Shown in pieces: positions 4,395 through 54,400 of a DNA stretch of 64,000 nt. This DNA comes from Nageia nagi (lineage: Eukaryota; Plantae; Pinophyta), in the NCBI GenBank assembly GCA_050084985.1, contig JBITNC010000002.1, forward strand, positions 23,560,001 through 23,624,000, written 5' to 3'. The notes beneath the pieces are model-generated. The model made no database searches and had not been told where the DNA came from. It was given only the letters and a program-made list of their open reading frames with translations. The stretch's first letter is position 1, and every line of letters starts with the position of its first letter. Position numbers and translations under genes: made by a program.

Positions 4395-5275
4395 ATAATC
4401 TTATTGTTAGGAATACAAATTTTGAGGTTTCACATTTAAGTGAATAGTAAGCTATTTGGTCATCTAACATCATTACATCATACTTTTGTTGAAATTTTAT
4501 TACTCTCAAGTTTAAAAGTTTTTTACCTATTTCATTGTAAAATATGTTTTGCATACATTAAAATATAAATAATATTTTTAGTATTATTTTTATTATAATT
4601 TTGAAATCTTTTTGATATATATATACATACATACTTCATTTTTTAATTTTCTTGAAATATAAATAAGTTTTTTATTCTAATTTTATTCATACTTTATAAA
4701 TATTTATAATATAATTTATATATATTTTAATGATTGCATTCAATGTAAAACTCTAATGTACAATTATTATTTTCTATGATAAAAACTTTATCTCTTAGTT
4801 AATGATTCAAATTTTATAATATAACATTTTTTCTATAGATAACACTAAAACAACATCTCATTTAAATATAAAATATGCCAAAATATCTCATTTGAACATA
4901 GAACATTGAAATCAAACTATTTATTAAGAATTACACTTATAAAAATAAATTTGACACCAAATGTATTTAAAATATTTAAGCTGATTTTGTGAACTCATAT
5001 AAATTTTATCCTCAAATTTTGATCATACAATTTCCAATTTTATCTTTTTAATGACAAGTATCATAAGACATAAGGTTAAATAAATCATAAACTCATGGCC
5101 CAATTTAATTTCTAATGATGTATGACGTTTGATTGCCTCTTCAAAAATAAATGAACATATAAATCATAAATCCCATCCTTAATAGTGTATTAAACTCACT
5201 TTTTTATAATTCAAATTATCATATATTATAACAATAATACACTTAATATACTCATCATAAAGTAATTTCCATACA

Positions 5276-7725: not shown

Positions 7726-8168
7726 AGTAATTTCCACACATTACCTTAATAGGTGAGAGTCATAATAAAATTTATATATTTCCATCATTAAAAATTACTA
7801 GTCCAAAATATTTCCTTGTGACTATTATGCTCTTTTATGTGGTTAAATCCGTTCCTCCTTCTCTTGTTGGTGAAAATGAAGTGTTGCTAAACAATTTCCT
7901 GCTTGCCTCTCTCACACAACGAAATGAAGTCTTGTTTCCCTTTTTAATCTTTGGCAGTGACCATGCAATCTTCTCCTGTGGCTAATCTCACAGACACTTC
8001 TTACATGACCCGCAAACATCTGTTCCACGCCTGTATTTCCTCCTAACGCTCCCAAACTGATTGGGTTTTTCCCACTCCACACACGCCTATCTCCCATCTG
8101 AAGAAAAAGATGAAGAAAAAATAGTACTTTGAAGTTGAAAAATTAGATTTAATATTGAAAACGTCAAT

Positions 8169-9398
8169 ATGTCTGATATGAATGGCTATTGGTGTTCCAA
8201 ACCCGTGGATTTATTGATCTAAAGCCAACCAAAACGACGGCTAATACAGTACAAAGTGGTGACGGTGATCTGAAAAGTTTTGCTAGAAGAAAAGAGTAAC
8301 GGAGTTTCTAAACAGATAACGGGAGTTGCTGGAACACCTTCCTAGAATCGAAAGAGACAATGGAAGATCAACAAAAAATAGAATCCCAAGAGGCAACAAG
8401 GCTTTGTACCTTTTTTTGGCGAACATTGATTGGTTTAATTGGTTGTTATTGTAAACTAGGTGTGGCTGCAGATTATACAGGAGTTGCAGGTTATGACACT
8501 ATTTATTAAAAATGTAAAATATGCCATCAACTTGAGGATACACAAAGTATGAAATGCTTTACATATGATGAATCATTCAAATTCGTTGCATGCTATCCTG
8601 AGTATAAACCCCAATAAACAAAAGCTCTAAGTAAGTACTGCTCAAATACTTCAGAGAACCCTGAAAATTTTCAATTTTATTTAATTTTTAACTAGTATCA
8701 GGCCAAGAAAACTGAACATATAGGAGTGATCCCAGAACAAGTTGCAATTCCATATAATTTTAACTGTGTATAATGTTTCGGAGGAGGAGGAATACAGAAT
8801 ATTGTTCGAAATGTGTTTCGATTCGTCTTTCTCATAGGTTTGCCATTATAGGATTGGCTCTAATTGAATTGGGTACCAGGTTTCGAACAATCCGGGGTTA
8901 TTGTATCGTCGGAGGAGAAACTTTGGGAGAAAAATATTTAGAGGAAAAGATGAAAGATGTAAATTTTGATACCATAGAGTTTCATAGATTGATGCCAACA
9001 TTAAAGTGACTTTTGTTATTAAGTTCAGCATTTGAACTATATTAGACAATAGCAATGTGGATTGTAGAATATATTGCAGAAAAACTGGCAACCTGCATTG
9101 TTATGAGGAAACCTGTCTTCAGTGCAAGGCAATGTTGTACAGAAAGGGTGATAAGATCTCAAACGGACGAGTTGCAAGACAAAACATTCATTGTAAAAAA
9201 TGGCGCAGGTAATACTCCCCTAATTTTTTAAGTATATAATTTGTTTGAAACAGGGTGTAAAATTGTAAAATATCAGGTATATTTTGCTACATACATTATG
9301 ACTTGAGTTGACAAAGCATTACTATCAGAGGTTCAAAAAATGGAACTGTTCTTGTGGCGGAGTGTGGGAAGCAAATCGTGCACATTGCTTGGTACAAG
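8169..9398 (+). pseudogene. Pseudogenised paralogue of the PHD/CW zinc-finger gene at 44858
   Basis: MSDMNGYW.., LKSFARRK, CKICHQLEDTQS, CKAMLYRKGD..CKKWR and LSEVQ..CSC..VW match the intact copy; same exon order; multiple stops and frameshifts; exon-4 acceptor CAG changed to CAA; intron homology continues to about 9720. Confidence 0.9.
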
Positions 9399-10249
9399 TG
9401 AGAATAACGTCGATACAATATTTAATTTAATTTTTATTTTAACATTCACAATGTTTGATTGCCATAATAATAATAATAATAGTTTAAGTGGATGATTGTC
9501 TGGCTCTCGAAGATTTACAGTATCAAAACTCATATTATTTGGTTGGTCAATCAATTTCCCAACATTCCTTCTTACGTGGAATTTTATTATTATTATTTAA
9601 TTTACATATCTCAATCTAATCACTATATCACTCATTGCGAAAATTCATTTTAGATAATATTAAAATTCATGTTCATTCCACCATTTTTATGGTTTACAGT
9701 TTTTTTATTTATTAATCTTTTAGCGTCACCTTCTCTAGGAGGAAGACCAACTTTCATTAAATTCGAATTTCTCATTTCTATAAATTTTTTATTTTAAATG
9801 TGTATCTTAAAATATTATATTAAATATATAAATATATTATAGTTATATATAAAATATTAATACATAATTAACATGAATTATAAGAATGAATATTTTTTAA
9901 ATAAATGAATTCTTATTCTATTTATGTTGGATTCTTACGAGATTTATTTATTTTTATTTGGTGTTTATGATATTTTCAAGATTTTATTAAATGTTAGAAT
10001 GAGTGGTTTAGCCCATGGTTTTCTAATATTACATTATGGTTTAGGTTTCTAGGTTTTTCTATATATTCATTATGATGAATCAATTGTAACGTACTATATT
10101 TGAGGAGAAACTTTTGATATACTTTAAATGTAAACCAAGGTAAATCTTATTTATTCTTTGTGTTTGTAAGATTGTTATGATTAATTAGTTTCTGCCTATA
10201 ATTTCTAAATAAATTTAGATTAAACTCTTCAATTTATACCTTAGTTTAC

Positions 10250-11699: not shown

Positions 11700-14600
11700 T
11701 CCTCCCCCTTGATGTTGATGGAACTTATTGATAGGCTTCTCAGCTTTAGAAATTGAGTTTTAACAACTCCTTTGGTGAACATATCTAGAATATTATCTAG
11801 GGTGTTGCAATATTTTTGTTTGATGATGTCCATCTCCACCATATCCTAGATGAAGTAATACTTCATGTCAAAGTATTTTGATCTTCTATGATGGACTGGA
11901 TTAAGTGCTAATTGGATGGCACTTTGGTTTTCATAAAATAAAATAGTAGAACCAATTTAATTCTCATTAAGTTCCTCTAGAACATTTCATAACCACAATG
12001 CTTGGGCACTAGCACTTATGATTGCAATATACTTCACTTTAGTAGATGGAAGAGCAATAATGATTTTCTTATTTGAACTCCATAAGATGAGTCCAAAACC
12101 AAGGCTAAAATAATGTTCGGATGTGGAATTTCTATAATTCAAGTTACTCCCCCAATTAGAGTTACTATAGCCACAAAGTTTTAGCTCGTCATGCTTGTAG
12201 TAGTGTAGGCAAAAGTCTAATGTGCCTTTGATGTATCCCATAATCCTCTTGCTTGCCTTCATATATTCTTCAGTAGGATCACTCATGTACCTAGACACAA
12301 GTGAAACAACATGAGCAATGTCTAGTCTAGTATTGGTAAGAAACATCAAACTCCCAACTAGCTTATAAACAAGGTTATATCAACCTTGGTTGTTCCATCA
12401 TCTATACATAATAGCTTTCCATGAGCTATTGGAGTGGGAAGCAATTTGCATTCATCCATACCATACTTCTTTCACATGTCATGAGCATATTTTGATTGAA
12501 AAAAAAAAATCTCACATTTTCTTTGAGTTAACTCCATGAGAAGGAAATAGTTCATCGGTACAAGATATTTCATCTTAAAGTATTGTATCATAGAGGCCTT
12601 GGAGTCATCATTCAATTTTTCACAATTTCCTATATAGATTAGATCACCAACATACAAGCACACAAGTAGGATTTTTTATCTTTCTTCATGATGTAGAGAG
12701 TGGCTCACTCTTGCTCATTATGAAACCATATTGATGGAAGTAACCATCAATCCTTGCATACCAAGCTCTTGAAGCTTTCTTGAGGCCATACAAGGCCTTC
12801 TTTAACTTATACATAAGATTTTCACTCCCTTCAACCTCAAATCCTTGAGGTTATTGCACATAGACCTCTTCTTCCAAATAGCCATTAAGGAATTCACTTT
12901 TGACATATATATGATTCACTAGCCAGCCATTGTAGGTAGCCATGGAAAGGACCAATCAGATTGTCTTTTGTCTTTCTATCAAAGAAAATGTTTCTACATA
13001 ATTGATGTCGTAGTGTTGGATAAAGCCATTTGGTACAATCCTTGCTTTGTGTCTCTCAATGCTTCCCTTAATATTGTATTTGATCTTATAGACCAATTTG
13101 TACCCAACATGGTTATTTCCTTTTGAAAGCTCCATAAGTTTCCAAGTATCATTTCTATTGATGGAAGAAATCTCTTTCTCCATAGCCTTCAACCATAAAT
13201 CATTAGTGCAAGCTTGATGATAATTAGATGGTTCAATCATTGTACTAGTTACCAAAGAATAGTTAACTAAATCATCTTTGGGTTCATAATTATCTTCATC
13301 ACCATACACATTTAAATTTTCAATCCTTTTTATAACTTGATCAAGTTCACTTGCTTGGCTCCTTGTCAATGTCCTTGAGAAATTTTGATCTAACATTTGG
13401 TTGGATGGGTGTGCTTGAAGTGTTCTTTTACCTTGATTTGCTTTTTATACCTTGGAAAGTGAAGATTTTTCTTTATTGGTGTGATCCAAAGGTTTCACTT
13501 TAGAGAAGTTATCTTCAATGGATTCATCATCATCAATTAGTTTTTTATGATCACATTCCCCCCTTGATCAAAACTGACATCTCTAAACACAACAAATTTA
13601 TCAATTTTTCGATTATATAATTTATATGACTTGGATTGCTCATAATAACCAATAAAAATACATGCTTGAATCTTAGGATCTAACGTTTTCCTATTTTTAT
13701 CAAAAATATGAGCATAAGCAAGACAACCAAAAAATCTAAATGCTTAGCAATAAATTTTTTCTCATACCATACCTCATAAGGTGTGATGCCATCCAAGTTT
13801 GAAGTTGGACTTCTATTCAATATGTACATGGTTATTCTTGCTGCATCAGCCCAATACATATTGCTTGAATTTTTTCTTTATAACATGCTCCTTTCCATCT
13901 CTACTATGGTTCAATTCTTCCTCTCCATTACACACTTTTATTATGGAGTATAGGAAGTTGTGAGTTGTCTCTTTATTTGATAATCCTTATAAAACTTGAG
14001 GAATTCATTGGAGCAAAATTCTCCTCCTCCATTAGTTCTTAAACACTTCACAATAGATTCAATTTACTTTTCCATATGAGTTTCAAAATTTTAAAATAGT
14101 CAAAGTTTGATCCTTGGAAATTAGAAAATAAATCCAACACATCCTTGTGTAATCATATATGAAAGTAAGAAAGTAGTAGTTCTTACCAATACTTTATGTT
14201 TGCATGGGACCATAAATATTGGAATGCACCAATTTGAGAGGATAGGAAGCTCTCCAAGCTTGGCCTCTTGGAAACTTCATTCATGAGTGCTTTCCTAAAG
14301 CACATCCTTCACACACTATCTTCTCTTCTTGAATATTGGGCAGCCCATGAACCATTTATTGAGATGTCAATAGTTTGAAACTTGGGTGGCTTAAATACTC
14401 ATATATCATATGCCAAAGCCAAATCTTGTTCTCCACAATTACATTTTCTAGTTGGATATAATCTTCTCCAAATTTGAGTGGAAATAATCTATTCTTGATC
14501 ATTAGGACTATAGTGACTAGCCTATGACCATTATTCTTATCATAGATCACATACTTTCCATCTTCAAAAATAAGCTTCTAGTTCTTCATAATTTGTTCCA

Positions 14601-23231: not shown

Positions 23232-26200
23232 CTCCCCCTCAAGTTGGTGTGTAGATATCTCTAACACCTAACTTGTCAAGTGAGTCATTGAATTTTCTGC
23301 TAGAAACTACCTTGGTAAGAATGTTAGCTAACTGATCTTTAGATTTAATAAAAGGGAACTGAATGATCTTCTCTTCTAGGTTCTATTTGATGAAATGTCT
23401 ATCTATCTCCATGTGCTTGGTGCAGTCATGTTGAATTGGGTTGTGAGATATGTTGATGGTAGCTTTATTATCATATAATAAATTCATTATAGAGTTAGGA
23501 GGAAAACTGACCTCTATTAGCAAACCTCTAAGCTAAAAAAGCTCACATAATCCTCTCACCATGCCTTAGAACTCAGCTTCAGCATTGGATAATGCTACCA
23601 CCTTCTACTTTTTACTCCTCCATGTAACTAAGTTTCCTCCCACAAATGTAAAGTGGCCTGAAGTAGACTTTCTATCCAAGATATTCCCATCCTAGTTTGC
23701 ATCCATGTAATTTAGATGAGCATTCTTGGAGAACATTAGTCCTTTTCTTGGTGATGACTTTAGATAGCAGAGAATTCAAATTACGGCACCCATATGGTCT
23801 TCACTCGGATTATGCATAAATTGGCTTACGCACTTATAGTGTAAGCAATGTCTGGATGAGTCTGAGATAAGTAAATGAGCTTCCCCACTAGTCTTTGATA
23901 CCTCACCTTATCGATTGGCACCTAGTCCGAATATTCTCCAAGCCTATGGTTCTACACAATCGATGTATCCACAGGTTTACACTTTAGTAATCCCACTTCT
24001 ATCAATAAGTCTAGTACATATTTTTGTTCAAAGAGGAATATGCCTTTTCTTGACCTCGCCACCTCTATTCCCAAAAAATACTTAAGCCCTCCCAAGTTCT
24101 TCATTTCAAATTCAGTAGACACTTATTCTCGTAGCATCAAGATCTCATCAGCATCATCCCCCGTAATTTTCATATCATCCACATAGACTATTAATGCTGT
24201 CACCTTGCTTTATTAGTGTTTTAGGAAGAGAGTATGGTTATATTTACTTTAGTGATAGCCATACTTCCTCATAGCTGAACTAAGTCGGCCAAACCATGCT
24301 CACGATGACTATTTTAGTCCATACAATGCCCTCTCCAATTTACAAACAATTTTGTTCCCAGCCAATCTTGTATGTCCTGGTGGAATATCCATGTATACCT
24401 CCTCATCAAGGTTACCATGAAGGAAAGCATTCTTCACATTGAGTTGATGTAGTGGCCAATCCAAATTTGCTGCAAGAGATAGTAAGACTCTAACAGTATT
24501 CAGTTTAGGTACTAGTGAGAAGGTTTCTGAGTAGTCTATGCCATACGTTTGGGTAAAACCCTTTACCATGAGTCTCACCTTATATCGATCAATTGATCCA
24601 TGAGCCTTGTATTTTATAGAGAACACCCATTTGCATCCCACTATTTATTTTCCTTTCGATAATGGGACCAACTTCCAGGTATTATTTTTCTTTAAGGCTT
24701 CTAGTTCTTCTTGCATTGCTTGTGCCCACTCTGGATTAGATAATGCCTCTTCAACACTACTGGGAATATGGAAAGAGGATAGTGTTTGAGTGAAAGTCTT
24801 GAATGGCTTGGACAGACCTTGAGTAGATACATAATTGGCAATTGGGTACTTGGACTTCCTTCCTTCTTCATCTAGGCTGTATCTGTTCGGTGGTTTCCCA
24901 CGATTGTGTCTAAAAGGCAACCCATAACTAGTAGGGGAATCCAAAATATTAGCATGTAAAGGAGTACTTACCTTAGGGACATTCTCAGGAGGAGGAGGGT
25001 CTTCAGGTACTAAGGAGTGAGGGAACTGAGGGTACTTTATATTTTCTACTTCTTCATTTTTAGCTTCTTCATTCCTCAAAATGACATCTTCATTTCTAGC
25101 TTCTTTAGCTTCTTCATTCCTCAATTAAACATATTCAATCTTTGGTGGTACCTCATGTGGTTCAACCTCTCTATTTCCTATTCCATGCTCACCCACGGGG
25201 GCCATCAACCAATTCATCTCTTCTACTTGAGTCTCCCCTTGAAGGGAAAAATTGGGTACCGATGAAGGATAGAAATTCTTGGACTCAAGAAATGTAACGT
25301 CCATGGTGATATAATTTCAATTGGTAGTGGGTTCATAGCACTAAAAGCCTTTTTTATGTAAACCATATCCCAAAAATAAGCACTGAATGACACATGGGTC
25401 CATTTTGGTATGCTGATTCTTATGGAGGTGGACAAAAGCAACACACCCAAAAATTCTAGGAGGAAGCATCAATATTGAAGGAAGGGGTATATGAGTAGAG
25501 AGGATTTGTAAGGGGGTTTTAAAGTGTAAAATTTTAGATGGCATATGGTTGATTAAGTACATGGCAGTAGCCATAGCATCCCCCCAATGGCAACTCAGCA
25601 CCATTGCTCCAAGGAGTAGGGCACGGGATGTTTCCAAAATATGCCAATTTTTCCTCTTGATGACACCATTTTGTTGTGGTGTGTGTGAGCATGAGTTCTC
25701 ATGGATGAGGCCATGTTGTTGGAAATAGGCTTGAAATCTTTGGTTGATGAATTCACCACCATTATCGGAATGAATAATTTTTATCTTGGAAGAGAATTGA
25801 GTCTGAACCATGGCATGAAATGCTTGAAATATGGTGAAAACTTCATCTTTGGTTTTTAGCTGATAGAGCCATGTCATTCGAGTACAATCTTTGAAAAAAA
25901 TTATAAACCAATGGTGACCAGAGGAAGTAGGTATTGGGGATGGTCCCCACACATTAGAGTGCATCAATGCAAATGGAGTAGTAGTTTTATTCAAGCTAAC
26001 TGGATAAGAAACTTGTTGGCTTTTAGCCTTGATACATGTATCACATTTAAAGTCCACATTCTACAAATGGAAAAATAAAGATAGGAGTAGATGCTGGAGA
26101 TAGCTAAATGATGGGTTCCCCAAGCACCTATGCCATAGCCAAATCTACCATTCATGGCTACTGGTTTGATGGTGCATGTGATTTGCTTTGCCTAGGTTGA

Positions 26201-27683
26201 AGTCATCAAGGTAGTATAGTCCCTCTCTCTTAGTACCATGCCCAATAATCTCCTTGCTGAGAACATCTTGAAGAAGACAAAAAGTAGAGTATATCAGCAC
26301 AACACAATTAAGCTCTTTAGTAACTTGAATCACATACATCAACTTGTTGGAGAGGGATGGAACAAGAAGTGTGTGAGCTAGAGAGAGAGAAGGAGATAGG
26401 GACACAGTTCTAGCCCCTGTGATTGGGTAAGTGGCCCCATTGGCATTGGCAATGAAATTCATTCATGTTTGAGTTGTGTTGTAGAAGTCATTTGGATCAA
26501 ATGTCATATGATCTATCACTCCAGACTCGATAATCCAAGCATCATTATTCTGAGTAGTAGAGCTGCAAAAAACTTGACCATAATTACCTTGATTTGGGGT
26601 TAAGGTAGAATGTTTAACTACAGGAATAAGAGAGAGTTGAGATCCAACCATGGCTACCACTACTCAACCTGGGACATCTTTAGTTGCAAGAGCATTTTGT
26701 TTCTTTTAGGCTTGTAATTCATGCCACCAGTCTAGGTAGCCATGTAATTTGAAATAGGTTTCCTGAGTGTGTTTTGTACTCCCATAGTGAGTGCATTTAT
26801 TCCCATCAGAATGACCTTTGCAGCATGAGGAGGACCCAAAATTATGTGACTAGCTAGATTTCATGCCTTTGATGGCCATAATAGCACCACTAGCCACTAC
26901 TTCTGCTCCCAATATAATCACATATTGTCAGAGATCTTCCCTTCGAACATGAGCATATGCCTGCTCAATTGAAGGGAAAGGTTTCAGGAAAAGAACATCA
27001 CTCCAAACATGATCCAATTGATCATATAGTCTATTAAAAAAAGTGTATACTCACTCCTGTAAAATGGAGTTGTAGCTTTGTATGTCAATTTCACATTTCA
27101 TTAGATTCAGTCGATAAAAATCGATCTCTCGCCACAATCCCTGTAGATCATTATAGTAATTTTCTATAGATCTTCCTACTTGCTTCATTCGAGATACATG
27201 ACATCTGAGCTCATATACCTGCGAGGTGTTAATTCCATCAAAGTATGTTGTGGTAGCAGAGTCCCATACCTGCTTAGCCATTGGTAGCGAATAAAGTTCA
27301 CGACCAAGGAATGGTCCATGGAGTTGATCAACCAGCCTTTCACCATGGCATTTTCAATGCACCACTTATGAAAGGAGGGGTTGGTTTTTGGTGGTTGGGG
27401 GTAGTCTCCATTGATGTATCCCAGTTTGTCTTTTCCTAAGATGTACATCTCAATAACTTGGGACCATAATCCATAGTTGGAACCATCCAACTTGATGTTG
27501 ATTGGAACCATCGGGGAATCAGTGATGGGAGAGGAAGAGATCTTGACCCTTGACAAAACCTCCATCATTTTTGATGTTAGACTATCAAGGATGTTTTTAG
27601 TGGAGTCAACCATGAAGGTCGAGCAAAATCTTGACCCCTGCCTGATCAAAAAATAGGGAACCCAAGATCATGCCATGATACCA

Positions 27684-32578: not shown

Positions 32579-35500
32579 TTCTCCCCCTTGATGCAAAGAG
32601 GACTCACCATGGAGTCTCTAAGCATCACATACTGAGCTTTGACAACACCTTTTATGAAAATATTAGCCAAGTTGATCTTGGTGTTGCAATAGTGAAGCTC
32701 AATTTGGTCCTTCTCCACCATGTCACGAATGAAGTGGTACTTGAGTTGGAAGTGCTTTGACCTACTGTGGTGGATGGGATTATGTGCCAACTAAATGGCA
32801 CTTTGGTTATCACAGTAAAGAATTGTTGGTCCATGTTATTTCTCACCAATTTCATCAAGTAGTTTCCTTAGCCATAAGGCTTGTGCACTAGCTACGGTGA
32901 GGGCTATATACTCAGCCTCACAATAAGAGAGAGCAACTGTAGATTGCTTCTTAGAACTCCATGTTATCATTCCTGAACCAAGTGAGAAACATTGCCCAGA
33001 AGTGGACTTCCTATCATCCAAATTGCTACCCCAATCACTGTCACTAAAACCAACAAGCTTAAACTTTTCAACATGAGAGTAGTGAAGACCATAACCAATG
33101 GTACCTTTAACATACCTCAAAATGCATTTTACAGCCTTCAAATGCAAAATAGAAGGATCATTCATGTATCTAGATACCAAAGAGATAGCAAATTGTATAT
33201 CAGGCCTAGTGTTGCAAAGGAACATAAGGCTGCCAACTATGCTTCTAAATTTTGTCACACTTGCTTTTGGAGCACCATCATCCTTACAAAGTAACTCACC
33301 ATGAGCTACAGGATTGTGAATAACAGTACAATTCATCATACCATACTTAGAAAGCATGTCCCTTGCATATTTACTTTGACAAACAAAAATCTCTTCTTAA
33401 CATTGGTGGACCTCCATGCCAAGAAAGTACCTCATAAGGCCCAAATCCTTCATTTCAAACTCATTCATCAAATCAGTCTTAAATTTGTTGTTCAAGATGG
33501 GATCACTTCCCATATATATCAAATCATCAACATAAAGAGAAACAAGCAAAGTCTGATTACCTTCTCTCTTGATGTAGAGTGTTGGCTCATTCTTGCTCCT
33601 CATGAGTCCAAAATTCTGAAAGTATCCATCTATGCGAGTGTACCAAGCTCTTGGAGCTTGCTTAAGACCATACAAGGCCTTCTTGAGCTTGTACACATGA
33701 TGTTCTTTTCCTTGCACTTGAAAACTTTGAGGCTGTTGTACAAAAACCTCTTCATCCAAGTAACCATTCAAGAATGCACTCTTCACATCCATGTGGTAAA
33801 CACTCCAATGGTTTTGGGTAGCCATTGAAAGAAGCAACCTTACTGTTTCTTGCCTTGCAACCGGTGCAAAAGTCTCTTCAAATTCTACACCATGTTTTTG
33901 TGTGAAGCCTTTAGCAACCAATCTTGCTTTGTGTCTCTCTATGGTACCATCACTGTTGTACTTGGTCTTGTAGACCCACTTGGAACCCACACACCTCTTT
34001 CCTTTGGGCAACTCACAAAGTTCCCAAGTGTCATTTTTGTTTATGGAGTGAAGCTCCTCTTGCATAGCCTTCACCCACATGTTTTTGGTGCAATCTTCCT
34101 CATAACAAGATGGATCAAAAATAGAAATATTAGTATTTGGGACTGCACACAAAGCATAGTTCACCATCTCACCCTTTGGATCCTCATCAAGTTCCATATT
34201 GCTAAATTGCTTAACAAACTTCTCCATTTCATGAAATTGACTTCTTGTTAATATTTGATGGAAATTTTGATCTAAAACTCGAGAAGGAGGATGGTTTTGA
34301 AAGTGTCTTTTACCTCTCTTGGTCTTCATCACTTCTTGGATCACTTTTGAAGAGCCACCACTTGAAGGTGAGCTTGGAGTGGATTTTGAGCTTTGAGATG
34401 GACTTGATGGAGGACTTGGAGGCACCACTTAGAGGTTTGGAAGAGAATTTGATCTCTTGGGCTGTACATTCTTTGCTTATGAAGTATCTTCATGGCTGGT
34501 CACTCCTCCTCCAATGTCTACAATGCATTTTTGCTGCTGTCCATACACTTTCCCCTCCTCAAAAATGACATCCTGGGAGACAAGTGTTTTCTTGGTTTTG
34601 GGGTTGTAAAGCCTATATGCTTTACTCTCATCACTGTATCCAATGAACACACATGGTTCACTCTTTGCATCCAACTTTTTTCTATGCTCCTTTGGCACAT
34701 GAGCATATGCCAAACACCCAAAAACTCTGAAATGCCGGACAGTAGGCTTCTTATCATACCAAGCCTCATAGGGGGTCTTGCCATCAATGGCACTAGTGGA
34801 ACACCTATTCAAGATGTAGTTTGCTATCTTTACCACTTCAGCCCAATACATGTAATGCAATTTTTTGGATTGCATCAAACATCTTGCCATCTCCATGAGA
34901 GTTCTATTCTTCCTCTCTGCCACACCATTTTGTTGAGGAGTATAGGCTGTAGTAAACTGTCTTTTGATGCCATTTTGCTTGAAAAACTTAGAAAAATCAG
35001 TAGAAGAATACTCTCCTCCTCTATCACTCCTCACACATTTAATCTTATGTTCACATTCATTCTCAACCATCTCTTTGAATTCTTTAAAAAACTCAAATGC
35101 TTCATCTTTATGCTTCAAAAAATAGACCCAACTCATTCTACTAAAATCATCAATGAAGGTGAGAAAATAAGAACTCATACCAAGACTTTTGTTTTGCATT
35201 GGTCCACATAAATCAGTATGAACCAACTATAGTGGGAATGAGGCCCTCCATGCTTTCCCATGATCAAATTTCTGCCTTGTTTGCTTGCCCAACACACAAC
35301 CTTCACAAACTGATTTTGGATTTTCAACAAGAGGTAAACCATGAACTAGCTCATGAGATAGTTTCAAACTACTGAAATTTACATGTCCAAATCTAAGATG
35401 CCATAACCAGGACTCATCTTTAACAGCCACATTTGCAAGAATATTATCCCCCTTTTCTCCAAGTTTCAATGGGAATAAACAATTTGGAGACATCTTAACA

Positions 35501-36689
35501 GTAGAAACTAACTTATGCCCATGGTTCTTATCAAAAATTTTACACTTACCCTCATCAAATACTAGCTTGTAGTTATTTTCCAACATCTACCCAATACTCA
35601 ACAAACTATGAGCCATATCCGGAGTGTGATACACATTGTGCATCTTCTTCATCCCATGCTTGGTAGGCACCTCAAGCATGCCTTTGCCAGCCACCTCAAT
35701 TGCAGAATTATTGCCAAGTTTGATACTTGACTTGTAGGAATGGTCCATGGATGAAAGTAGCTCCCCCTTACCGGTCATATGGTTTGAACATCCAGAGTCC
35801 AACAACCAAGTCTCCTCTTGTTTTGTTTTAGCCATATTGGCTGTCTCCTCCATGGAAAGAAAGAGAGTTTCACCATACTCTTCTTCCTCTCCAAAATTTG
35901 CCACTTTTCCATCACCATTTGCCGCTTGTTTTGCTCTACACTCCCTCTCATAATGCCCATACTTGTTGCAGTAGTAACATTGAGCATTCCTCTTGTCACC
36001 ATTGCTTCTACCTCTTCCTCTTATGCTGGAATAGCCTCCTCTTTACTGGATTGGACTGGTTCATCATCAACCATTTCTTCATGAGACATAAGGCAGCCAA
36101 TGAGAGAATCTATCTCCATTTGAGAGAGGTCTTTTGTCTCCATCAATATCACAGCAATGTGATGCCACTTCTTGGTAAGAGATCTCAGAATTTTTTTTAT
36201 TACAATGGCCTTCTCCAAGGTCTCTCCAAGAGTTAGCATTTTGTTCACAATCTCTTTCACTCTAACACAATAATCTGAAGCTTTTTCACTCTCCTTCATT
36301 TTTAAATTCTCAAATTCTGCCCTTAGAATCTGCAATTTTACCTCCTTCACTTGATCACTCCCTTGGAATCCTACCTTCAACACAGCCCAAGCCTCTTTGG
36401 CTATCTTGCAGCCTGCAATTCTTGGAAAAATGCTCCTATCAAGAGCTACTTGGAGATGAGACAAGGCAAGAGAGTTCTTGCTCCTACATTCCTTCATAGC
36501 TTTCTTATCTTCTACAGAAAGAGAGCTCCAATCTGCTGGCTCTACATAGCCATCATCAATAACATCCCACAAATCTTTGCCAATGAGCAAAGTTTGTATC
36601 TTGATGCTCCAATATCCATAGTCAATGCCATCAAACTCTGGAATGGGAATGGATGAGCTTGTGTTGCTGGCCATTATACCTGCAAACAA
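32530..36689 (-). pseudogene. Copia-4 gag-pol polyprotein (gag, CCHC, protease, GAG-pre-integrase, integrase, RT, RNase H) with several nonsense codons and one frameshift
   Basis: WLLDSGCSNHM; VHTDLCGP...SDRGGEY...QQNGVAERKNR; LYVDDL; FSDSDW...EAEY; collinear ORF fragments, frameshift near 36020. Confidence 0.95.
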
Positions 36690-44857: not shown

Positions 44858-45429
44858 ATGTCTGAGAGCAGTAGCTATTGGCGTTCTGAGTCCAAACGAT
44901 CTGTTTATCTGAAGTCAAAAAAACCCACTGCTAATAAAATTCAAAGTGTTGATACTGATATCAAAAGTTTTTCTAGAAAAAGAAAGAAACCAAATTCCAA
45001 AAGAACAATCGGAGTTGCACAGACAACCACCTCCAAAAAGATAAAAAATGTTCTACCGGCAATGGAATCGATAGAGGAAACGGAAGAGCAAAAACTATTG
45101 AAATACCAAAACGCCAAAGCAATTTGTATCTCTACATTGAAGGAGTATAATTTAATTGGTTGTCATTCTAAAGGAGGTGCAGCTGCAGATTTTCCAGGGG
45201 TCATATGTGATGGTAGTATTCAGCAAAGATGCAAAGTATGTAATGAACTTGAGGATACACAGTCAGTGATATGTGATAGATGTGATGAAATATTTCATAT
45301 TCGTTGCTTACCATCTAAGTATAAACGCAAGAAAGTAGAAGATGCTGAGGATTTTTACTGTCCACATAACTGCAAGAACCCTGAAAATTTTGTGTTTGTC
45401 GGAACTCATCCTACAGGATATAGTTCAGA
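44858..45429 (+). CDS. PHD/CW gene coding exon 1 (basic NLS-like region + PHD finger)
   Basis: ATG 44858; donor GA/GTAAGT at 45430; upstream acceptor TTTTGCAG ending 44805 implies a 5' UTR intron. Confidence 0.9.
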
Positions 45430-48400
45430 GTAAGTGCAAATTGAACATCACATTAATTGTGTATACTGTTCGGGATAAGGAATAATAAAGAATTTTATTA
45501 GAAAAGTCTTTTTTTTTTTAAATTTTAAGATAGACTCTAACTGAATGTGGAACCAGGTATCAGGGAAGCGAAGGGATTCCTCTATCCTGGGAGGAGAAAC
45601 GTTGGGAGAAATTATCTTTGGAAGAAAACTTAAAAAATGTAAATTAAGATATCACGCAGTTTGGTAGAGGAATATGCACATTTAGTGAGTTTTGATATTA
45701 TGCTTCAATGAGGACTTCAACATGTGAACTATATTGAACAATAACATTGTGGATTGTAGAATATCTGGGATAAAAACTGGAAGCCTGCAACTTCTATAGC
45801 ACATGATGAGGAGGAAAACTGGCTTCGATGCCAGGCAATGCTGTATAAAAAAGGTGATACGCTTCCAGATGGGGAACTTGCAAAAAAAAACGAGCCTTGT
45901 GAAAAATGGCGCAGGTAATTCTGCCCTATTTTTAAAACATAATTGTAAAATTCAGGGTATATTTTGGTAGATACAAGCATTTGAGCTTATACATTAATAC
46001 TTGATTTGACAGAGCACCACTATCAGAAGTTCAAACAACTACATGGGATTGTTCTTGTGCGGTGGTGTGGGATCCACATCATGCAGATTGCTTAGTGCCA
46101 CAGGTAAGAAAAACATGGATATGCTACTTAATTTATTTTGATTTTCATTTAATTACAATTGTAATAAAAATTTAGCTGGATGATTCATGGCTGTGGGAGA
46201 CTAATAATGAGAAATATCATAATTGATACTCTTTGCTAGGCCAATCAATTTTACTTCTGATGTCCGATTTCTTATTATTAGTAGTTATTCTTCATGTATC
46301 AACCTAATCCAATTGATTATTTTTCCCTCTTGATGAAATTTCCAATGGATTATCTTGATTAAAATGAATCTTCATACCATTTTTATTTTGTTCTATTTTT
46401 TCCTTTTTAATTATTTAACCTATCTTTGTAGCAAAGTATATCAACTTCCACATGTGGAGTACTTTGGTCCTATATCTTATTTAATAAGTCAAATACTTCT
46501 TTTAGGCATATAGCTCTAAATGTAATAGTGGATATATGGTCAATGTGGTGATATTTTCCAAAAAAATAAACACAAAAAATATTAATATGCAAAAATAAAA
46601 ATGAAATTATATATACCCTTATATTATCAAAATGCAAGGTTTTAAATCGGATCTCAAAACCAGGTCACAAAATTAGTTTCTATGTATAGAAATCCCTACC
46701 TAGCTATACCTTGTGGTAGCCAAAAAGATACTTAGCTATCTCTGAAATATAACCAAAACTTAGCTAGATTACATACAAAACTAATGTCAAGCTACTAGAG
46801 ACTATAACATTAATACTATTCTATAGGTCTACTTGGCATAGGTCTTCTTAGCTTCTCCCTCACTAAGGCTGCTTTCTTCTACATCTTCTTTTCCTCTACT
46901 CTAGTCTAGACTTTGAACTGAAGAACTATGGAATTTGATTTAGGGACAAGCTGATCTGCTAGAACCCATGCCAGAGGTTTGATACTTAGAGGTTTAACCA
47001 TTTTCTCCTTTTTTGTCATTTTGTGAAAATCCTCTCCTACCCTTTTTTTAGGTAAAACATCCTCATTTTTGGGTAGATTTTCACTTGCACTCTTAGTGAG
47101 TGCAAGTTGAGCCTGAGCCAAGATAGGGGTTTCTTGAGGAGTTTCATCAAGGTGAGGAACTTGAGGCCAAATTATGAGTGGTGAATCATATTCCATATGA
47201 ACCTCTTCTACATCTAGATAACTCTAAGGAAAAGGGCTATCCTTCCCATCATCACCTTCCTCATTCACTTCTCCTTTACTTTTTACATCCTTTGTTTGTC
47301 CATCTAATGCCTCACCTTCCTAAATACCTTCGAGGATCTAGGAAGGGGGTTCCAAGATCTCCTAGGTAGTCTAATTTGATGAAGCTATTGGTCCTTCATA
47401 TGTAATTAAGGATGGGACCAAAATCCCAATCCCTTCTAGATAAGAGGGGGGATGATAATTTTCCTCAGCCTAAATTGATACCAAAGAAGGTACTTTGGGG
47501 GTACCATCATCCTAAATATTCATAATTTTAATCCCTTCATTGTTTACCTTGGCCTTCTTACCCTTGGATTTTTGGGATCAGGTTACCATTCTTCAGCTAC
47601 TCAAAGGGTTTGATGTTGAATTTTTCTTCAAGAGCCCTCCATACTTTTTGGGTGTTTTAGCTTTTTTAGCTCTTTTTCTCTTTTCTTCCCTAGATTCTAA
47701 TGTCATTCCTTCTTGGTTTTTGTTGGACTTGGAGGGTTTAAGATTCCACTCTACTACTCTTCTTCTTTTCCTTATCTAATTTTGTAGGTGAGTTCTTTTT
47801 AGAGGTTTCCTCTTAAATAGTTTGATCGAACTTAATTTTCATACCAAGGGTTTCTATTAATGCTTTTCTATACATAAAGGTAATGAGACCCAGATGTCCC
47901 ATTTGGAATTCCTCTATGTTTCTCACTTGTTGAATTGAGACCTTGATGGAATCCACCAGAAAGAAAGGAAAGCATACTTTGAATGCTTCACCCTTTCTAA
48001 AATGACATAATAAAATAATATTAGGGCCAAAAATAATAATATACCACCCATCCATCATGAAATACTTGGTTAACCACTTCATGAAATAGTTCCATGGTGC
48101 TGGGAGGCTCTCACAATCAATTCATATGCATTTCTTAGTGATGGGTTCCCTAGGAGCTAAGAAGGCTTGAATTTCTATAGGCTTTACTTTGGAATTATGC
48201 TTAAACATCCTACCATCCAATCTTAGAGAATTATCTTTGGCAATGGTACTTAATGTTTAGTTGACCCTCACCATTCCAATTACTACCCATCTATTATCAA
48301 CACTATTAACCACTAAATATTTTAGATCCAGTTCATGGTCCTAATATTTCTTGAGGTATTGTTGCATTCCTCCATTTGTTAATATGTCCCATACCTCCCT

Positions 48401-51400
48401 ATCCCGTTGAACTTCTCTAAAAATTTTGGGTTCAATGATACTACTTTTTCCTATATTTATAGAGAGGAAAATTGCATACAAATGGGTTCATGGAGGACTC
48501 AAAAATAGGAAATGCAATGGGGATGAAATGATTGAGTCATAATGCCATTGTACACCATATTTTAGTAATTTTCCTTGGAGTTTGATTTCACCATAGGTTG
48601 GCACGTGCCAAGTAGTCACATCCACCAGAAAATAAATATCTAAGGGATGATAAGATCGAGATGTGAGTACTCAAAGCTGATGGTCATATCATCTACCCTT
48701 GCTCCAATCTAGATGTTACACATCATCCTTCCATTTAAAGGCTCCCTCTATCATCCACCATGTCATTGAATATGGACTCTAAGAGGAGCTAATATTATAG
48801 TGAGTATGACTCAACATCCCTAGTGGGATCCAACTGTATGTAGTAGTCAATGTTCTTACATAAGAATCTTAAGCAATGCTTCCAAGCCTTGGTAGAGTTT
48901 CTGCTACATCCCTTAAATAATCTATCATTTTGTTTTTTCCAAATCATCCAACAAACATGAGGAGGAATCATTTCCCATATTAGCTAAGGTTTCTTGTTAC
49001 CTTATTCCAATCTCCCTTGTTCTATTGCAACAACTAGAGAATGTGGGATCACCCATTGATCATGAAGACTAGAATTCACAATTCCCCATAGGTCCTTTGC
49101 ATAATCATAGTTAAGGAAGATGTGATCTAAGGTTTCTTCTACTTTTTTACATAGAATACACATACTAGTAAAGGACATACCTTTTTTTTAAACTTTGTTA
49201 GTATGGATTCTTCCTAGATAAGTTACCCAAAGGAAGCTAGCTATTTTGGGGATTAGTCCTTTTATCCAAACACTAGTCCACATTTGTCTTCAAGGATATC
49301 TTCAATTCAAATTTTTTCCTATCTTGATTAAATATTAAATATTTTTTCCTTTTTCATCATTTTATTGTAAATAATCTATTTTTTTAGTGGGGTATAGCGG
49401 AATCTTTCTAATATTTGGAGGAGTTCTTCTCTCTACTTTGTAAATAGGGGATTTTTAGGTTGAGGGATGGACCACCAGACTTCATTATTAAGTTGGGACA
49501 TGTAATTGACCGCTCTAATATTGAATCTAGACTTATTCCATAACATTAGGAGGTTCCATTTTGGTTAATCTTCCAAGAAGGAAGGGCCAATCCATCTATC
49601 ATCTCATAATAATGTTGTTTGACCATTATTAACTTCCTAGATTGCTTTTGTTTCTATGGTGTCCCTTAGCTCAAGCAAAGAATTCTATAAGGAAGAACCT
49701 TTTGAGGGATTCCTTCGGCTAAGAAAGCTATTCCTTCCATGTTATTAAAATTGCATATCTTTATCCACTCTCTATCCTTATTCTAGCATAGTTTTCATGC
49801 TAGTTTCAATTGCATTGCTTGGTTAAGTAATCTGATTTGTCTAATTCCCAAACCCCCTTTAGCTTTCTTTCTACAAACTCTATCCCAAGCTACCAAGGAC
49901 ATTATTTTCTTATCCTTAGTACCATTCAAAATAAATATTCTACATATTTGATGAATCTTCTCTGCCACTAGAGTAAGAATCTTAAATATGCTTCCCATAT
50001 AGATGAGAATACTTTGGAGAGAATCTTTGACATATTGAATTTTACCAAATAGAATTAGTAAAACAGCTTTCCAACCAACTATTTTATTATTTAGTTTGTT
50101 AAGAGCCTTATTCCAAAAATCCCTTTGAACTCAACCTTCAAATAGTGGCATTCCAATATAAGTGGTTGGGAGATAACCTGTTTGGCATTGGAAAATCTAA
50201 GATATTTCTCCACTTATCCAAACAGGAGTATTGAATAAATATATATTGGTTTTTTTATAATTAATTTTTTAATCAGAAGCCTACTCATATTTTTCTAAGA
50301 TGAAATTCATGGTTTGGTCCTCTCCAATGCTTGCTTTCCGAACCAGTATGGTATCATTAATAAATTGATGATGTGTAATGGGGTAGTAGTTGTGTGTATG
50401 TTTGATCACTCTAATAATTCCAAATTGATTATCTCATTTTAAGGATCTTTCTAGTACCTCAACCATTGTAATGATTAGATATTATGACATATAGTCCTCT
50501 TGTCATATTCCTTTGGATGAATTAAAAAGCCTACATCTTCATCATTAACTAACACTTAGAAGATAGCTCTTTATGTGTATTTACTAACCCATGTTCTCCA
50601 TTGATTCTAGAAACTAAATTATTCATGAACTTGATTTAGTAATTTCCAAGAGATTCAACTATAGGCCTTTTGCATATCAAGCTTAATGATCATAACCTCT
50701 TCCTTAGAGGCTTTGATAAAATGAAAAGTTTCATGCATCAGAATAAACCCATAGGAGATCTATCTATCTCTCACAAAATCATCCTATTCAACTAAAATGA
50801 TTTTAGGAAATACCTAAACCATTTTATTTGCAAGCAATTTTATGATAATCTTACAGATTGTGTAACATAAACCTATAGGTCTAAAATTCTGCAAATTATT
50901 CATTTTGTGAAATTTTGGAATGAGGGTAAAAAATATTATGTTCCAAAATTTCAAGAGAGTGTTGTGTCTTTGGAATTCTTGGATGGCCTTAATAACATCA
51001 TCTCCAACAATAATATAAAATTTATGAAAGAAGCATGCCGAGAATCCATTTGGTTTTGAAGATTTATTTGTTTCCATCATAAGTATTATGGAGGTAATTT
51101 CATCTTCAAATAAGGAAGCTAACAGCTTGATATTATCCTCAATAATAATTAGTGGAAGGATATTTTCAAGGATTTCTTTGGTTACATTTTGATCTTCTTC
51201 AATTGACTTTGTAAGGAGATTCTTGTAGAAAGAAAGTAACATATCTTTAATCTCATATTCATCTTAAATTAGGATTTTATCCTCTCTTTCTAATGTTCAA
51301 ATTTTATTAAAGACACTTATTCTTTGTGTTGATAGTTTAAAAAATTTTGTATTATGGTATCCTTCTTTTATTCATGAAATTTTAGATTTCTGCTTCAAGA

Positions 51401-54400
51401 AGATTTCTTCTCTTTTGAGGATAAGTTTGTATTGATTCTTAAAGGAGTTTTCTTTTACAACAATTTCTTAAGATCTTCCCTCTCTTTGGATAATAGCTTC
51501 AATCAAATCAAGTTCTCCTCTTATCTTTATTTTCTCCTTCTTAATATGCTTGAAATTATTTTAGCTCTAAACTTTCAAATTTGCTTTCAGAATATCAAGT
51601 TTCTTCTAAAGTTGGAATATTTTTATCCCCTTTACTTATGTGTTATACCATTATTCTACCTTTTCTTTCAATTATGGATGGATGAGCTAAATGGTTTCAA
51701 ATATAAAAGGGGCTCTCTTTTTTTATATATGGGAATGCTTATAACAAAATGGGGATATGATTTGAATCAATTTTAAATTGAGTTAATAAGGCATAGTCAA
51801 GAAATTTATCAAACAAAGAAAAAGAAAAAAACTACACTATCCATCTTAGTTTAAATGAGATCTTCCTCAACTCACATATTATTCCATGTAAACTCTACCC
51901 TTATTAGATCCAATTATATTAGATTACTAATATACAAAAAACTATTTAGGTCATCCATATCATTATCTTTCTATCTCCCCCCTCTAAAATTTTTACAAGG
52001 GTGTAGGATTGTGTTAAAGTCACCCATGATGATCCATGGCATATCAGGGAATTGCAATTTATCTTCAATTAAGAGATAAAAAAAAATTTAACTCCCATAG
52101 AGTCATCAACCCACCAAAGGCTCCATCTAATTCTTGCCTTCATAATTTTAACTCCTTACACATCCTTATTTTTATATCAATTATGATGTCATCTTTTATT
52201 TTTTATTCTTGAATTAGTACCATGTGTGGTTTTTTATCATACCAAATATCCATAAAGGATATTTTTCTTCCAAGGGCATTTTAGCCCCTATTATTCCAAG
52301 ATAGGATCTTCATTGAGGACCTACCAAGACCCCTTGGCCTCCACTCTACTCTAGAGTGAATTTTTCAATTAGCAATATCCTATTTTGTGAGCCTATTCCT
52401 AATTTCTCCTGAAGAAGGTCTTCCTGGATGGGCTTGCCCAACATTTGGTGGTTTTCAAGTATTCATAATATTTCAGGATAGGATATCCAATCCTATGTTT
52501 TATTATTATGTGACCATAGTTTTAGCTTGATTTTCTACATTTTTGATATTTTTAATGATCTTCATAATTTATTCATCTCCATCTTCACCCTTAACAATTC
52601 CAACAACTTCCATATTTGTGGCTTCATTTTCAAAAAAATCAAATGGTATTCTAGATTTTCCCTATCATTTCCTTAAATCTATTTTTAGGTAAATCTATTT
52701 TTGGGTTTGTAAATATTTTATGTTTAATTAATGAAAGTAAAATTTTACTTCTCTTTATGGTATTACAGAAATATTGTAAGTTTTAGTGAGTTAGAGAAGA
52801 GTGTATGGGTATTTGCAATAATTTAGAGATATTATGTAAAGTTTGAATGACACCTCAATTTTTTTGTTGTGTTGAGCGTTGTGTAATGGTTGCAAACAAC
52901 AACACTCTACCTATCCTAAAGTTCCATGAAGAAGATTATGAGTATTGATCTATCAAAATGAATATGCTACTCATACACAATAGGTTATGGGATATTGTTG
53001 AGGAAGGATATAGTGATCCAACAAATTGGAACACTCTCTATCCTAATGATAAGACTGCAAAGAAGGAGGCTCAAAGAAGAACTCCTTTATATTCTATCAT
53101 TTCTTTGGAGATGAGTATCTTTCTTATGATTACTTCATGCACTTCAGCTTTGGATGCATGGAAAGAACTCAAATATGGTTATCAAGGTAGAAACCAAGTA
53201 AAGAAATTGAGGTTTCATGACCTAAAGAGATATTTTGAGAATCTCAAGATGCAAGGTGATGAGATTTTGGAAGATTAATGTGTGAGAGTAAAAGCATGTA
53301 TGGATAAGATGAATGCCCTTAGAGAGGAGATTAGGAATAAAATTATAGTGAAGAAAGTGTTGAGAAACATTCTTCCCAAGTGGAACCATGTGGAAATAAT
53401 AATAGAAAAGTCAAAATATCTTTCAACTCTTACTTATGATCTACTTATAGGATCCTTGATGTCTCGTGAAGAGAGATGCAAAGATTCCACACCATCACAT
53501 GTAGGAATTAATTAAGGAAATAATTTTGTAACAAATGAGTTTGAAGCTACCAATGCACAAAAAAGAGACTAAGTGAGAGGCTAGACATGTCTTCAAGTGG
53601 AAGAAGAAGAGGAAGGATAGGATCTTATGAGGAAGAGGAAGAGGTAGAGGTGGTTCAAATGGAAAGGGGAAAAGAAAAGAAATAATGTTACTATTATAAC
53701 AAAATTAGGCACTATAAGAGGGAGTGTAAAACAAAGACTAACCAATAAGGTGGAAGTGTAGTCCATTATGGAGAGGATGATGGATCCTCCAATTTTTTTT
53801 CCTCTTATAAGAAGACTAATCAAAATCTTAATGAAACTTGGATTCTACATAATGGTAAAGGAGAGTTGTTTTCCATAATGGATAATAGTTTTAAGTCCAA
53901 GATAAAACTTAAAAATGATAATTCATTAATTGTTAAAGGAATCATAGCCATGTAGATTAGAACCAAAGAGGGTACCAAGAAGGTAAATAACAACTACTAT
54001 ACTCCTAATCTTAAACATAATTTGCTAAGTGTGGGATAAATAATTGAAAGAAACTATAAACTTATATTTGAATATGGAAAATGTGTAATCTATGATAAGA
54101 GTAATTGATTATAGTATATGAGATATGAGCATTTAAGCTACCAAAGTTTGAGATTATTGACATTTGAAAAATAGCCAATGGATTGTCCAATATTAAAGAA
54201 GATAAGACTATGTGTGAAGGATGTACTTTGGGAAAGCACTGATGAATAGCATTTCCAAGAGGATAAGCTTCTAGGAATTTATACATTTTTTAGTTGGTGC
54301 ACTCTGACATTTGTGAACCTATGCAAACATAGAGCTTGGGTATGAAATTATACTTTCACACTTTCATAGATGATTACATAAGGATATGTTAGATTTATTT

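Follow-up and report, generated by a model that had tools for sequence, protein, structure and literature searches.

A decayed third open reading frame behind ORF2 of an L1-clade LINE in Nageia nagi and its gymnosperm protein family

Two LINEs with a reading frame behind ORF2

The window, that is, the whole stretch of 64,000 nucleotides of Nageia nagi DNA that was analysed, contains two LINEs on the minus strand with an additional reading frame, ORF3, downstream of ORF2. LINE-A is an old, decayed L1-clade element that runs from about 52.9 to 46.4-46.6 kb (46380-52880), its approximate outer limits being set from translations and from the unrelated repeats on either side (45522-46309 and 52886-53497). 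Translation of the minus strand gives the order endonuclease, reverse transcriptase (RT), zf-RVT, spacer and decayed ORF3. ORF2 starts with 'MKILSWNNRG' near 52310, and the endonuclease remnant (51950-52310) includes a weak Exo_endo_phos (EEP) match at 52087-51974 that is below the cutoff (E 0.0017). The RT region (49798-51263) is fragmented and gave no Pfam match; its identity comes from L1-type motifs only, namely 'FRPIGLCYTICKIIIKLLANKM', 'AKGGLGIRQIRLLNQA' and 'FRPIGL...KLLANKM', the last at 51263-50817. The zinc-binding region at the ORF2 C-terminus, zf-RVT (49005-49289), matches PF13966 at 49187-49005 with 27.8 bits (cutoff 27.5), and the ORF2 tail extends to 48798.

Between this tail and ORF3 there is a spacer of ~350 bp (48452-48797), a gap of only ~115 codons, which has neither RNase H nor an A-tract and in which 'TCTATAAATA' adjoins the former ORF3 start codon; Pfam found no RNase H in any LINE-A fragment. 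The ORF3 of LINE-A (48451 to 46830, minus strand) consists of an N-terminal domain (47858-48451), whose start codon has decayed to ATA and which is broken by three in-frame stops, and of a charged low-complexity linker and tail (46830-47857) with more stops and frameshifts. It is dead. With stops read as X, the translation 'IGKSSIIEP' from the ATA at 48451 aligns with the start of intact relatives, 'MGGDPVTTEP', and the phmmer matches of the N-domain include P0002 (5e-27) and P0001 (1e-17). The end of the 3' UTR (46380-46829) is uncertain and lies either at ~46620, as given in the preliminary description of this locus, or at an A-rich tract (46412-46378). No target-site duplication (TSD) was recovered for LINE-A when its flanks were searched; two candidates, a 12-mer at 46247/52741 and a 10-mer at 46625/52951, fall inside the flanking repeats at chance level and were rejected.

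LINE-C (5277-7725, minus strand) is a 5'-truncated L1 insertion, cut within ORF2, that comprises zf-RVT (7701-7405, 61.1 bits), RNase H, spacer, ORF3, 3' UTR and an A7-8 tail. The RNase H is a C-terminal motif of the RVT_3 type at 6982-6833 and is below the cutoff (E 0.0028). The 3' copy of its TSD (5261-5276, AGTAATTTCCATACAT) is followed by a plus-strand T-run corresponding to the A-tail, and the 5' copy (7726-7741, AGTAATTTCCACACAT) is identical to it at 15/16 positions. The N-domain of the LINE-C ORF3 (5841-6383, minus strand) is frameshifted, with profile matches to a core and to weak flanks; its collinear pieces occupy three frames (6383-6273, 6291-6148, 6154-5912 and 5939-5841), and the flanking pieces, weak as they are, keep the order of the profile. 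Since a single 16-bp TSD with one mismatch encloses, together with the A-tail, the zf-RVT and RNase H of the ORF2 end, the spacer and ORF3, ORF3 moved together with the LINE, and was retrotransposed with ORF2 as one RNA.

The shared layout of ORF2, spacer, ORF3 and 3' end that the preliminary description had reported is borne out by translations and domain matches in both elements, as is its statement that RNase H is present in LINE-C, if below cutoff, with none clear in LINE-A. These are the only two verified copies with both ORF2 and ORF3, and both are dead. The EEP, RT and zf-RVT of the L1 clade were found, and LINE-C bears the TPRT signature of A-tail, TSD and 5' truncation. The two elements thus resemble plant L1-clade LINEs in EEP, RT, zf-RVT, poly(A) and TSD, with RNase H in one and absent in the other, but differ from them in the extra, separately initiated ORF behind ORF2, of which full-text literature searches returned no description in that group. 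In textbooks, LINEs have one or two genes.

Homology, distribution and selection of the ORF3 family

At the nucleotide level, blastn detected no similarity between LINE-A and LINE-C, and a tblastn search of the window with pieces of the LINE-A ORF3 did not detect LINE-C, because stops and frameshifts break the match there; a profile search succeeded. The direct alignment of the two ORF3 proteins is weak when taken alone, with two collinear blocks and a raw score of 50 against 34.6 +/- 4.0 in shuffles, 0 of 300 of which reached 50. Profile alignment had been fixed beforehand as the test of the preliminary claim that the two proteins are homologous despite little DNA similarity, and the result was highly significant: the external-only profile, made from family homologues outside the window and without the window sequences, matched LINE-A at 48436-47858 with 134.5 bits and LINE-C at 6154-5909 with 59.6 bits. 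With the full-length profile, the match in LINE-A extended over 48451-47648 (134 bits, profile positions 19-272) and the LINE-C core reached 65.5 bits, and the profile search found no third ORF3 copy in the window. Both LINEs matched, in the external-only profile, the N-domain motif of the family, SLPxPW...KY(L/F)TLEG(K/R)(F/Y)...H...LL.H...VN.P.FL..S...HQGL. Two divergent L1 lineages, of which one has RNase H and the other lacks it, carry a member of the family behind ORF2, which agrees with the earlier proposal that ORF3 spans distinct L1 subfamilies.

Homologues are numerous in other gymnosperms: Ginkgo has at least 30 models (Gb_*) and Taxus chinensis at least 29 (KI387_*), none of which carries a Pfam domain. 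The reference members are of the Ginkgo Gb_10421 and Taxus KI387_008716 type, and the homologues are annotated as hypothetical proteins. No Pfam domain reached threshold in the ORF3 pieces or in 20 long homologues, and a protein atlas search with a 102-aa piece of LINE-A returned no usable match. ORF3 is a conserved gymnosperm protein family unnamed by any Pfam model. Intact relatives have ~400 aa. In their predicted structure the N-domain of ~200 aa is folded with confidence, the linker behind it, often with an RKRK motif, is acidic/basic and disordered, and the C-terminus forms a helical hairpin (EELRCHLKVLNGLGG...NLLTLEITNYLKEV). The hairpin was undetectable with the full-length profile in the decayed tails of LINE-A and LINE-C, and the C-terminal part varies across the family, the C-termini of the Taxus members being different too. 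Many copies carry stops. With pN at 0.18-0.36 and pS saturated at 0.75-0.9, the pN/pS ratio of about 0.25 indicates, from sequence comparison, that the family evolves under purifying selection.

ORF3-only retroposons in related contigs

Related loci, which were searched with an alignment of 10 close rows, contain ORF3 in a different setting, as poly(A) retroposons of 1.6-1.75 kb that carry ORF3 only, have their own TSDs and terminate in a conserved 3' end followed by A9-11. The TSDs measure 15 bp at L007, 10-14 bp at L002/L001 and about 10-15 bp at L004/L003, and the retrocopies have a common 5' end with a leader of 250-350 bp. This end lies some 10-15 bp ahead of 'GGAAAT...', at roughly 330 bp from the ATG on its upstream side. 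In all Ginkgo-type loci fetched, ORF3 occurs without ORF2: tblastn with the ORF2 pieces of the window found none within 3-10 kb upstream, and the parent full-length LINE was not seen there. A likeness by eye between the 3' ends of Ginkgo-type units and the window was dropped, as nhmmer, run with a profile built on the 3' UTR of Ginkgo-type copies, had no significant match in the window, and a hairpin predicted at the 3' end of the ORF3-only units showed no covariation.

The existence of such units raises the question of whether the LINE-A ORF3 is itself an ORF3-only retroposon that landed by chance, in the same orientation, behind a LINE. The leader length of the ORF3-only units is close to that of the LINE-A spacer, no outer TSD attests LINE-A as a single insertion, and the Ginkgo-type loci show that ORF3 can stand without ORF2. 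In LINE-C, however, the ORF2 end and ORF3 lie inside one TSD, neither LINE has an A-tract between ORF2 and ORF3, and order, orientation and spacing are alike in two unrelated LINEs. Nor was an inner TSD found in either LINE, the longest common word, of 9 bases, being equal to the shuffle median; and the possibility raised in the preliminary description, that 46620-48500 is a separate insertion, found no duplication, termini or A-tract to mark it. We consider a chance insertion quite improbable, and ORF3 is treated below as part of the LINE.

It could also be argued that the family consists of host genes and that the LINE copies are passive 3' transductions or processed pseudogenes, given that the Ginkgo and Taxus homologues are annotated as if they were ordinary proteins and that PMD-type host genes such as MAIN are known (PMC13547354). 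Against this, each genome has dozens of paralogues, the copies share a 3' motif with poly(A) and TSDs, many of them are interrupted by stops, and ORF3 occupies one and the same position in two divergent LINEs, where it has a start codon of its own. We give this explanation very little credence as an account of the present family, and prefer ORF3 as a LINE gene; a host gene captured long ago may have been its origin.

In mammals, HAL1 ('half-L1') elements, which have ORF1 only, propagate with their coding sequence under purifying selection. The ORF3-only units are similar in being poly(A) retroposons with TSDs and a single LINE-type ORF under selection, and like HAL1 they depend on RT and endonuclease supplied in trans, but they keep the 3' accessory ORF and not ORF1. 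Such coding but non-autonomous derivatives of LINEs are of a new kind and hint that ORF3 has an mRNA of its own. Translation of a third cistron from a full-length mRNA is poor in eukaryotes, and so ORF3 would probably be expressed from a shorter one, subgenomic or spliced, of which the ORF3-only retrocopies with their common 5' end may be the retroposed copies.

Fold and putative role of the ORF3 protein

The only whole-domain fold match of the ORF3 N-domain is VANC21, on whose crystallised, DNA-bound part (PDB 9lnj/9lnk) it superposes over ~190 residues, with a match of middling strength and an identity of about 10%. There is no link to VANC21 at the sequence level, as the family profile found nothing among PDB sequences, VANC21 included. 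VANC is a sequence-specific, anti-silencing DNA binder of VANDAL transposons that carries the Pfam domains DUF1985 and DUF287 (PMC5735166), neither of which had a match in the window pieces or in 42 family members, even at E <= 10. VANC is encoded by Mutator-like DNA transposons (VANDAL) in Arabidopsis and has been described as dicot-specific, whereas ORF3 belongs to a non-LTR retrotransposon in a gymnosperm. VANC is reported to have structural homology with MAIN, a PMD protein (PMC13547354), so that by analogy the ORF3 fold probably falls in the PMD/MAIN structural class. The PMD (PF10536; MAIN/MAIL1, ORFs of Ty3/gypsy elements and MULEs) is a domain found only in plants, where it passes back and forth between transposons and host genes, but PF10536 had no match in the ORF3 family at any threshold tried.

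The preliminary description had also likened ORF3 to accessory proteins of plant transposable elements, and this held in part: PMD, Transposase_32, DUF1985 and DUF287 all remained below threshold in the window pieces and the 42 family members, as did every other Pfam family, but two weak leads point to Transposase_32 (PF20167, 'putative plant transposon protein'). The first is the match of one member of the 42, P0041, whose residues 5-173 align with profile positions 13-172 (160/177 positions) at 14.6 bits (cutoff 45) and E 0.031, a value that is the chance expectation for 42 scans. The second, to be taken as a lead only, is that the nearest named language-model neighbour cluster of ORF3 carries PF20167 (score 0.90). 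The two families are similar in length and in predicted pattern, and PF20167 is not known from LINEs.

Given that the N-domain superposes on a DNA-bound protein, the ORF3 protein (ORF3p) may serve the LINE as an accessory protein that binds DNA or chromatin in the nucleus. Its most likely role, by analogy with VANC, would be to bind the DNA or chromatin of its own element and to blunt methylation-based silencing, and an anti-silencing role of this kind is plausible. An RNA-binding ORF3p, which would form ribonucleoprotein like a second ORF1p and aid the reverse transcription of its own RNA instead of acting on DNA or silencing, would explain both the retroposition of ORF3-only RNA and the maintenance of its ORF under selection. 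Such a function is suggested by the propagation of the ORF3-only units under purifying selection on their coding sequence, as in HAL1, by the C-terminal helical hairpin, which recalls the ORF1p coiled coil, and by the middling strength of the VANC21 match; yet that sole whole-domain match is to a DNA-bound protein, Pfam found no RRM, zinc knuckle or other ORF1-type domain, and the RKRK motif of the linker suggests nuclear import. We regard the RNA-binding alternative as unlikely. Our preferred reading, which we hold with good though not full confidence, is that the stretch at 48451-46830 is the dead ORF3 of an old L1-clade LINE, from a family encoding a putative nuclear DNA- or chromatin-binding accessory protein that would most likely blunt silencing.

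A wider proposal can be put forward more speculatively, and we would not expect all of it to hold: that the third gene of gymnosperm L1 LINEs codes for a sequence-specific anti-silencing factor of the VANC type, whose shorter mRNA retroposes and gives rise to the ORF3-only elements. If true, this would be the first anti-silencing system in a non-LTR retrotransposon, DNA transposons, LTR elements and LINEs would each have taken up the PMD/VANC fold on their own, and the persistence of LINEs in the huge, heavily methylated genomes of gymnosperms could in part be explained. The counter-defence of retrotransposons against host silencing is largely unknown, and in plants almost the sole case worked out is VANC, from a DNA transposon. 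A conserved third gene of L1 lineages, under selection and with a VANC21-like predicted fold, is a concrete candidate for counter-silencing in non-LTR elements. The ORF3 family also gives a name to dozens of Ginkgo and Taxus proteins that are annotated as 'hypothetical'.

Organization of LINE-A and LINE-C

Three-frame translation of positions 52600 to 46400 of the window identified LINE-A as a decayed L1-type LINE on the minus strand, in which ORF2 begins near 52310 ('MKILSWNNRG') and is followed through an endonuclease fragment (52087-51974, Exo_endo_phos E 0.0017), the RT motifs 'FRPIGLCYTICKIIIKLLANKM' (51263-49798) and a zf-RVT match (49187-49005, 27.8 bits vs a cutoff of 27.5) to the end of its tail at 48798. 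After a spacer of ~350 bp comes ORF3, the third open reading frame, with three in-frame stops between 48451 and ~47650 and a charged, frameshifted tail from ~47650 to ~46830. Its first codons, ATA GGA AAA ('IGKSSIIEP'), align with the 'MGGDPVTTEP' amino terminus of intact relatives, so that the ATA, standing opposite their initial methionine, is a decayed ATG. A perfect TATA-like 'TCTATAAATA' adjoins this codon (48455-48465, minus strand); it is not the promoter of the LINE-A ORF3, the distance being too short, and may be a chance product of AT-rich DNA.

The second, divergent element, LINE-C (5277-7725), lies on the same strand and shows, in order, a zf-RVT (7701-7405, 61 bits), the C-terminal motif of an RNase H (6982-6833, RVT_3 E 0.0028, below cutoff), a spacer of ~450 bp and the ORF3 homologue. 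As the preliminary description had it, LINE-A is without a clear RNase H while LINE-C carries one: none of the fragments between the LINE-A zf-RVT and ORF3 gave an RNase H match.

In regards to the possibility that ORF3 is a neighbouring, separate insertion, LINE-C has both its ORF2 end and its ORF3 inside one outer target-site duplication (AGTAATTTCCATACAT at 5261-5276 and AGTAATTTCCACACAT at 7726-7741, read on the plus strand), the first copy of which adjoins a T7-8 run corresponding to the A-tail of the minus-strand element. The ORF2 end, RNase H, spacer, ORF3, 3′ UTR and tail thus derive from a single retrotransposition event. The ORF2-ORF3 interval contains no A-tract in either LINE, and in the search for an inner duplication the longest word common to spacer and 3′ flank was 9 bases, equal to the shuffle median. 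An outer duplication was not recovered for LINE-A. The LINE-A candidates were rejected because their positions fall within flanking repeats; these flanks are diverged repeats of 68-73% identity (45522-46309 vs 8845-9621, and 52886-53497 vs 15766-15151), and the matching repeats also sit near LINE-C.

Homology, range and selection of the ORF3 family

The two ORF3s had been proposed as homologous despite little DNA similarity, and blastn indeed finds none between the two LINEs. Their direct protein alignment, with stops as X, scored 50, whereas shuffled sequences gave 34.6 +/- 4.0 and none of 300 reached that score; taken alone, this is only suggestive of homology. A phmmer search with the 102-aa open piece of the LINE-A ORF3 against 1.84 billion representatives returned 19 proteins, among them Gb_10421 of Ginkgo and two hypothetical proteins of Taxus chinensis. 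A profile built exclusively from external proteins then matched the six-frame translated 64-kb window at 48436-47858 (LINE-A, 134.5 bits) and 6154-5909 (LINE-C, 59.6 bits), with no third match, and this confirms the homology at profile level. With a full-length profile of 30 sequences, LINE-A (48451-47648) scored 134 bits and the LINE-C core 65.5 bits, and weak LINE-C pieces in two other frames (6383-6273, 6291-6148 and 5939-5841) kept the profile order.

The family members recovered by the searches include about 30 gene models from Ginkgo (330-600 aa) and at least 29 from Taxus chinensis (280-510 aa), none of which contains a domain in a Pfam scan. Relatives are encoded on 13 metagenome contigs, and four contigs from another source (QQTW01066349, QQTW01043846, QQTW01084819 and QQTW01084405) score up to 144 bits with ~30% identity to the Ginkgo type; judging from these sequences, the family may extend taxonomically beyond Ginkgo and Taxus. 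Of six copies, two are intact and each of the others has 1-9 stops. Copy-to-copy pN is 0.18-0.36 against a saturated pS of 0.75-0.9, which shows that purifying selection acted on the protein during lineage divergence. ORF3 is thus a conserved, selected, LINE-borne gene family common to L1 lineages that carry RNase H and others that lack it; both copies in the window are dead. Searches of full-text literature, largely from outside subscription journals, turned up no account of a LINE bearing a third ORF of this kind.

Two Ginkgo models, P0040 (Gb_32267, 849 aa, weak DUF659 match) and P0053 (Gb_27439, 954 aa, precomputed PF28397), join the family to other parts, which may reflect either chimeric annotation or domestication.

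ORF3-only retroposons

In the Ginkgo-type contigs no LINE ORF2 was found within 3-10 kb upstream of ORF3. The gene instead forms units of 1.6-1.75 kb (for example L007:2735-4344, and L002:1034 to L001:1458, among contigs L001-L009), in which the ORF follows a leader of 250-350 bp and precedes a 3′ UTR of ~230 bp that ends in a conserved TGTAAAAGGTTTGGGGACCTTTCAACACCCCTTCTACCTTAAT and A9-11. For this 3′ end a 7-bp hairpin is predicted, without covariation. Target-site duplications surround three units (L007, 15 bp exact; L002/L001, 10-14 bp; L004/L003, ~10-15 bp with transitions). Homology of the L002, L004 and L005 units begins just upstream of a common 'GGAAAT' motif, and L002 and L004, whose duplications are mapped, start within ~10 bp of one common position. 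ORF3 would probably be expressed from a shorter mRNA, of which the ORF3-only units would be retroposed copies.

Beside one unit lie an EEP-endonuclease-like ORF ('VILLGDFNARTG', L001:1418-2164, plus strand), without a Pfam match, and, on the opposite strand, an RT fragment (L002:660-1106, RVT_1 36 bits, 'FVDFRKAFDSV'); their motifs suggest a LINE that does not belong to the L1 clade.

Predicted structure and possible role

The AlphaFold2 model of the intact protein P0021, from a 30-row alignment, shows a mixed alpha/beta domain at residues 10-205 (pLDDT above 90), a disordered linker (206-330) and a helical hairpin (338-390). Most Ginkgo-type members have an RKRK(P) motif in the linker; the pI of the N-domain, 7.7-9.2, is mildly basic. 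In VANDAL transposons, silencing is lifted by VANC proteins, which contain DUF1985 and DUF287 and bind short motifs within the element's own non-coding DNA (PMC5735166); VANC reportedly shares structural homology with the PMD protein MAIN and has a coiled coil predicted to dimerise (PMC13547354). The top Foldseek match of the P0021 model in the PDB was 9lnj_A, a complex of VANC21 and its target DNA (E 0.021, probability 0.98, 217 columns), the others being noise (probability 0.04 or less); at the sequence level no link to VANC21 was found. The Transposase_32-like resemblance suggested earlier persists as two weak, mutually independent leads to PF20167, a language-model neighbour cluster (0.90) and one hmmscan match over 160 of 177 profile positions, but across 42 scanned proteins an E-value such as that of the latter (0.031) is expected by chance.

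By this fold match, the ORF3 protein would be an accessory factor that acts in the nucleus and binds DNA or chromatin, and VANC-like counter-silencing would be the leading guess as to its action, albeit a tentative one that may well prove wrong. The main competing proposal for its function is a role in a ribonucleoprotein, as for ORF1.

The short motifs that VANC targets stand in tandem within non-coding DNA; in this respect a 16-bp unit, TAAATCTATTTTTAGG, present 2.1 times in tandem upstream of the LINE-A ORF2 (52674-52706), may be of interest.

Elsewhere in the window, a PHD finger (PF00628, 28 bits) is encoded by an intact ORF of 191 aa (44858-45433, plus strand) ~1 kb past the LINE-A 3′ flank; this ORF may represent either a gene or part of a transposon. 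Several ORFs for Ty1/copia-type polyproteins (integrase, RT, gag) occur on the minus strand at 11987-13396, 24309-27649 and 32836-36689; the frames at 32.8-36.7 kb are long and open, and the element there looks young.
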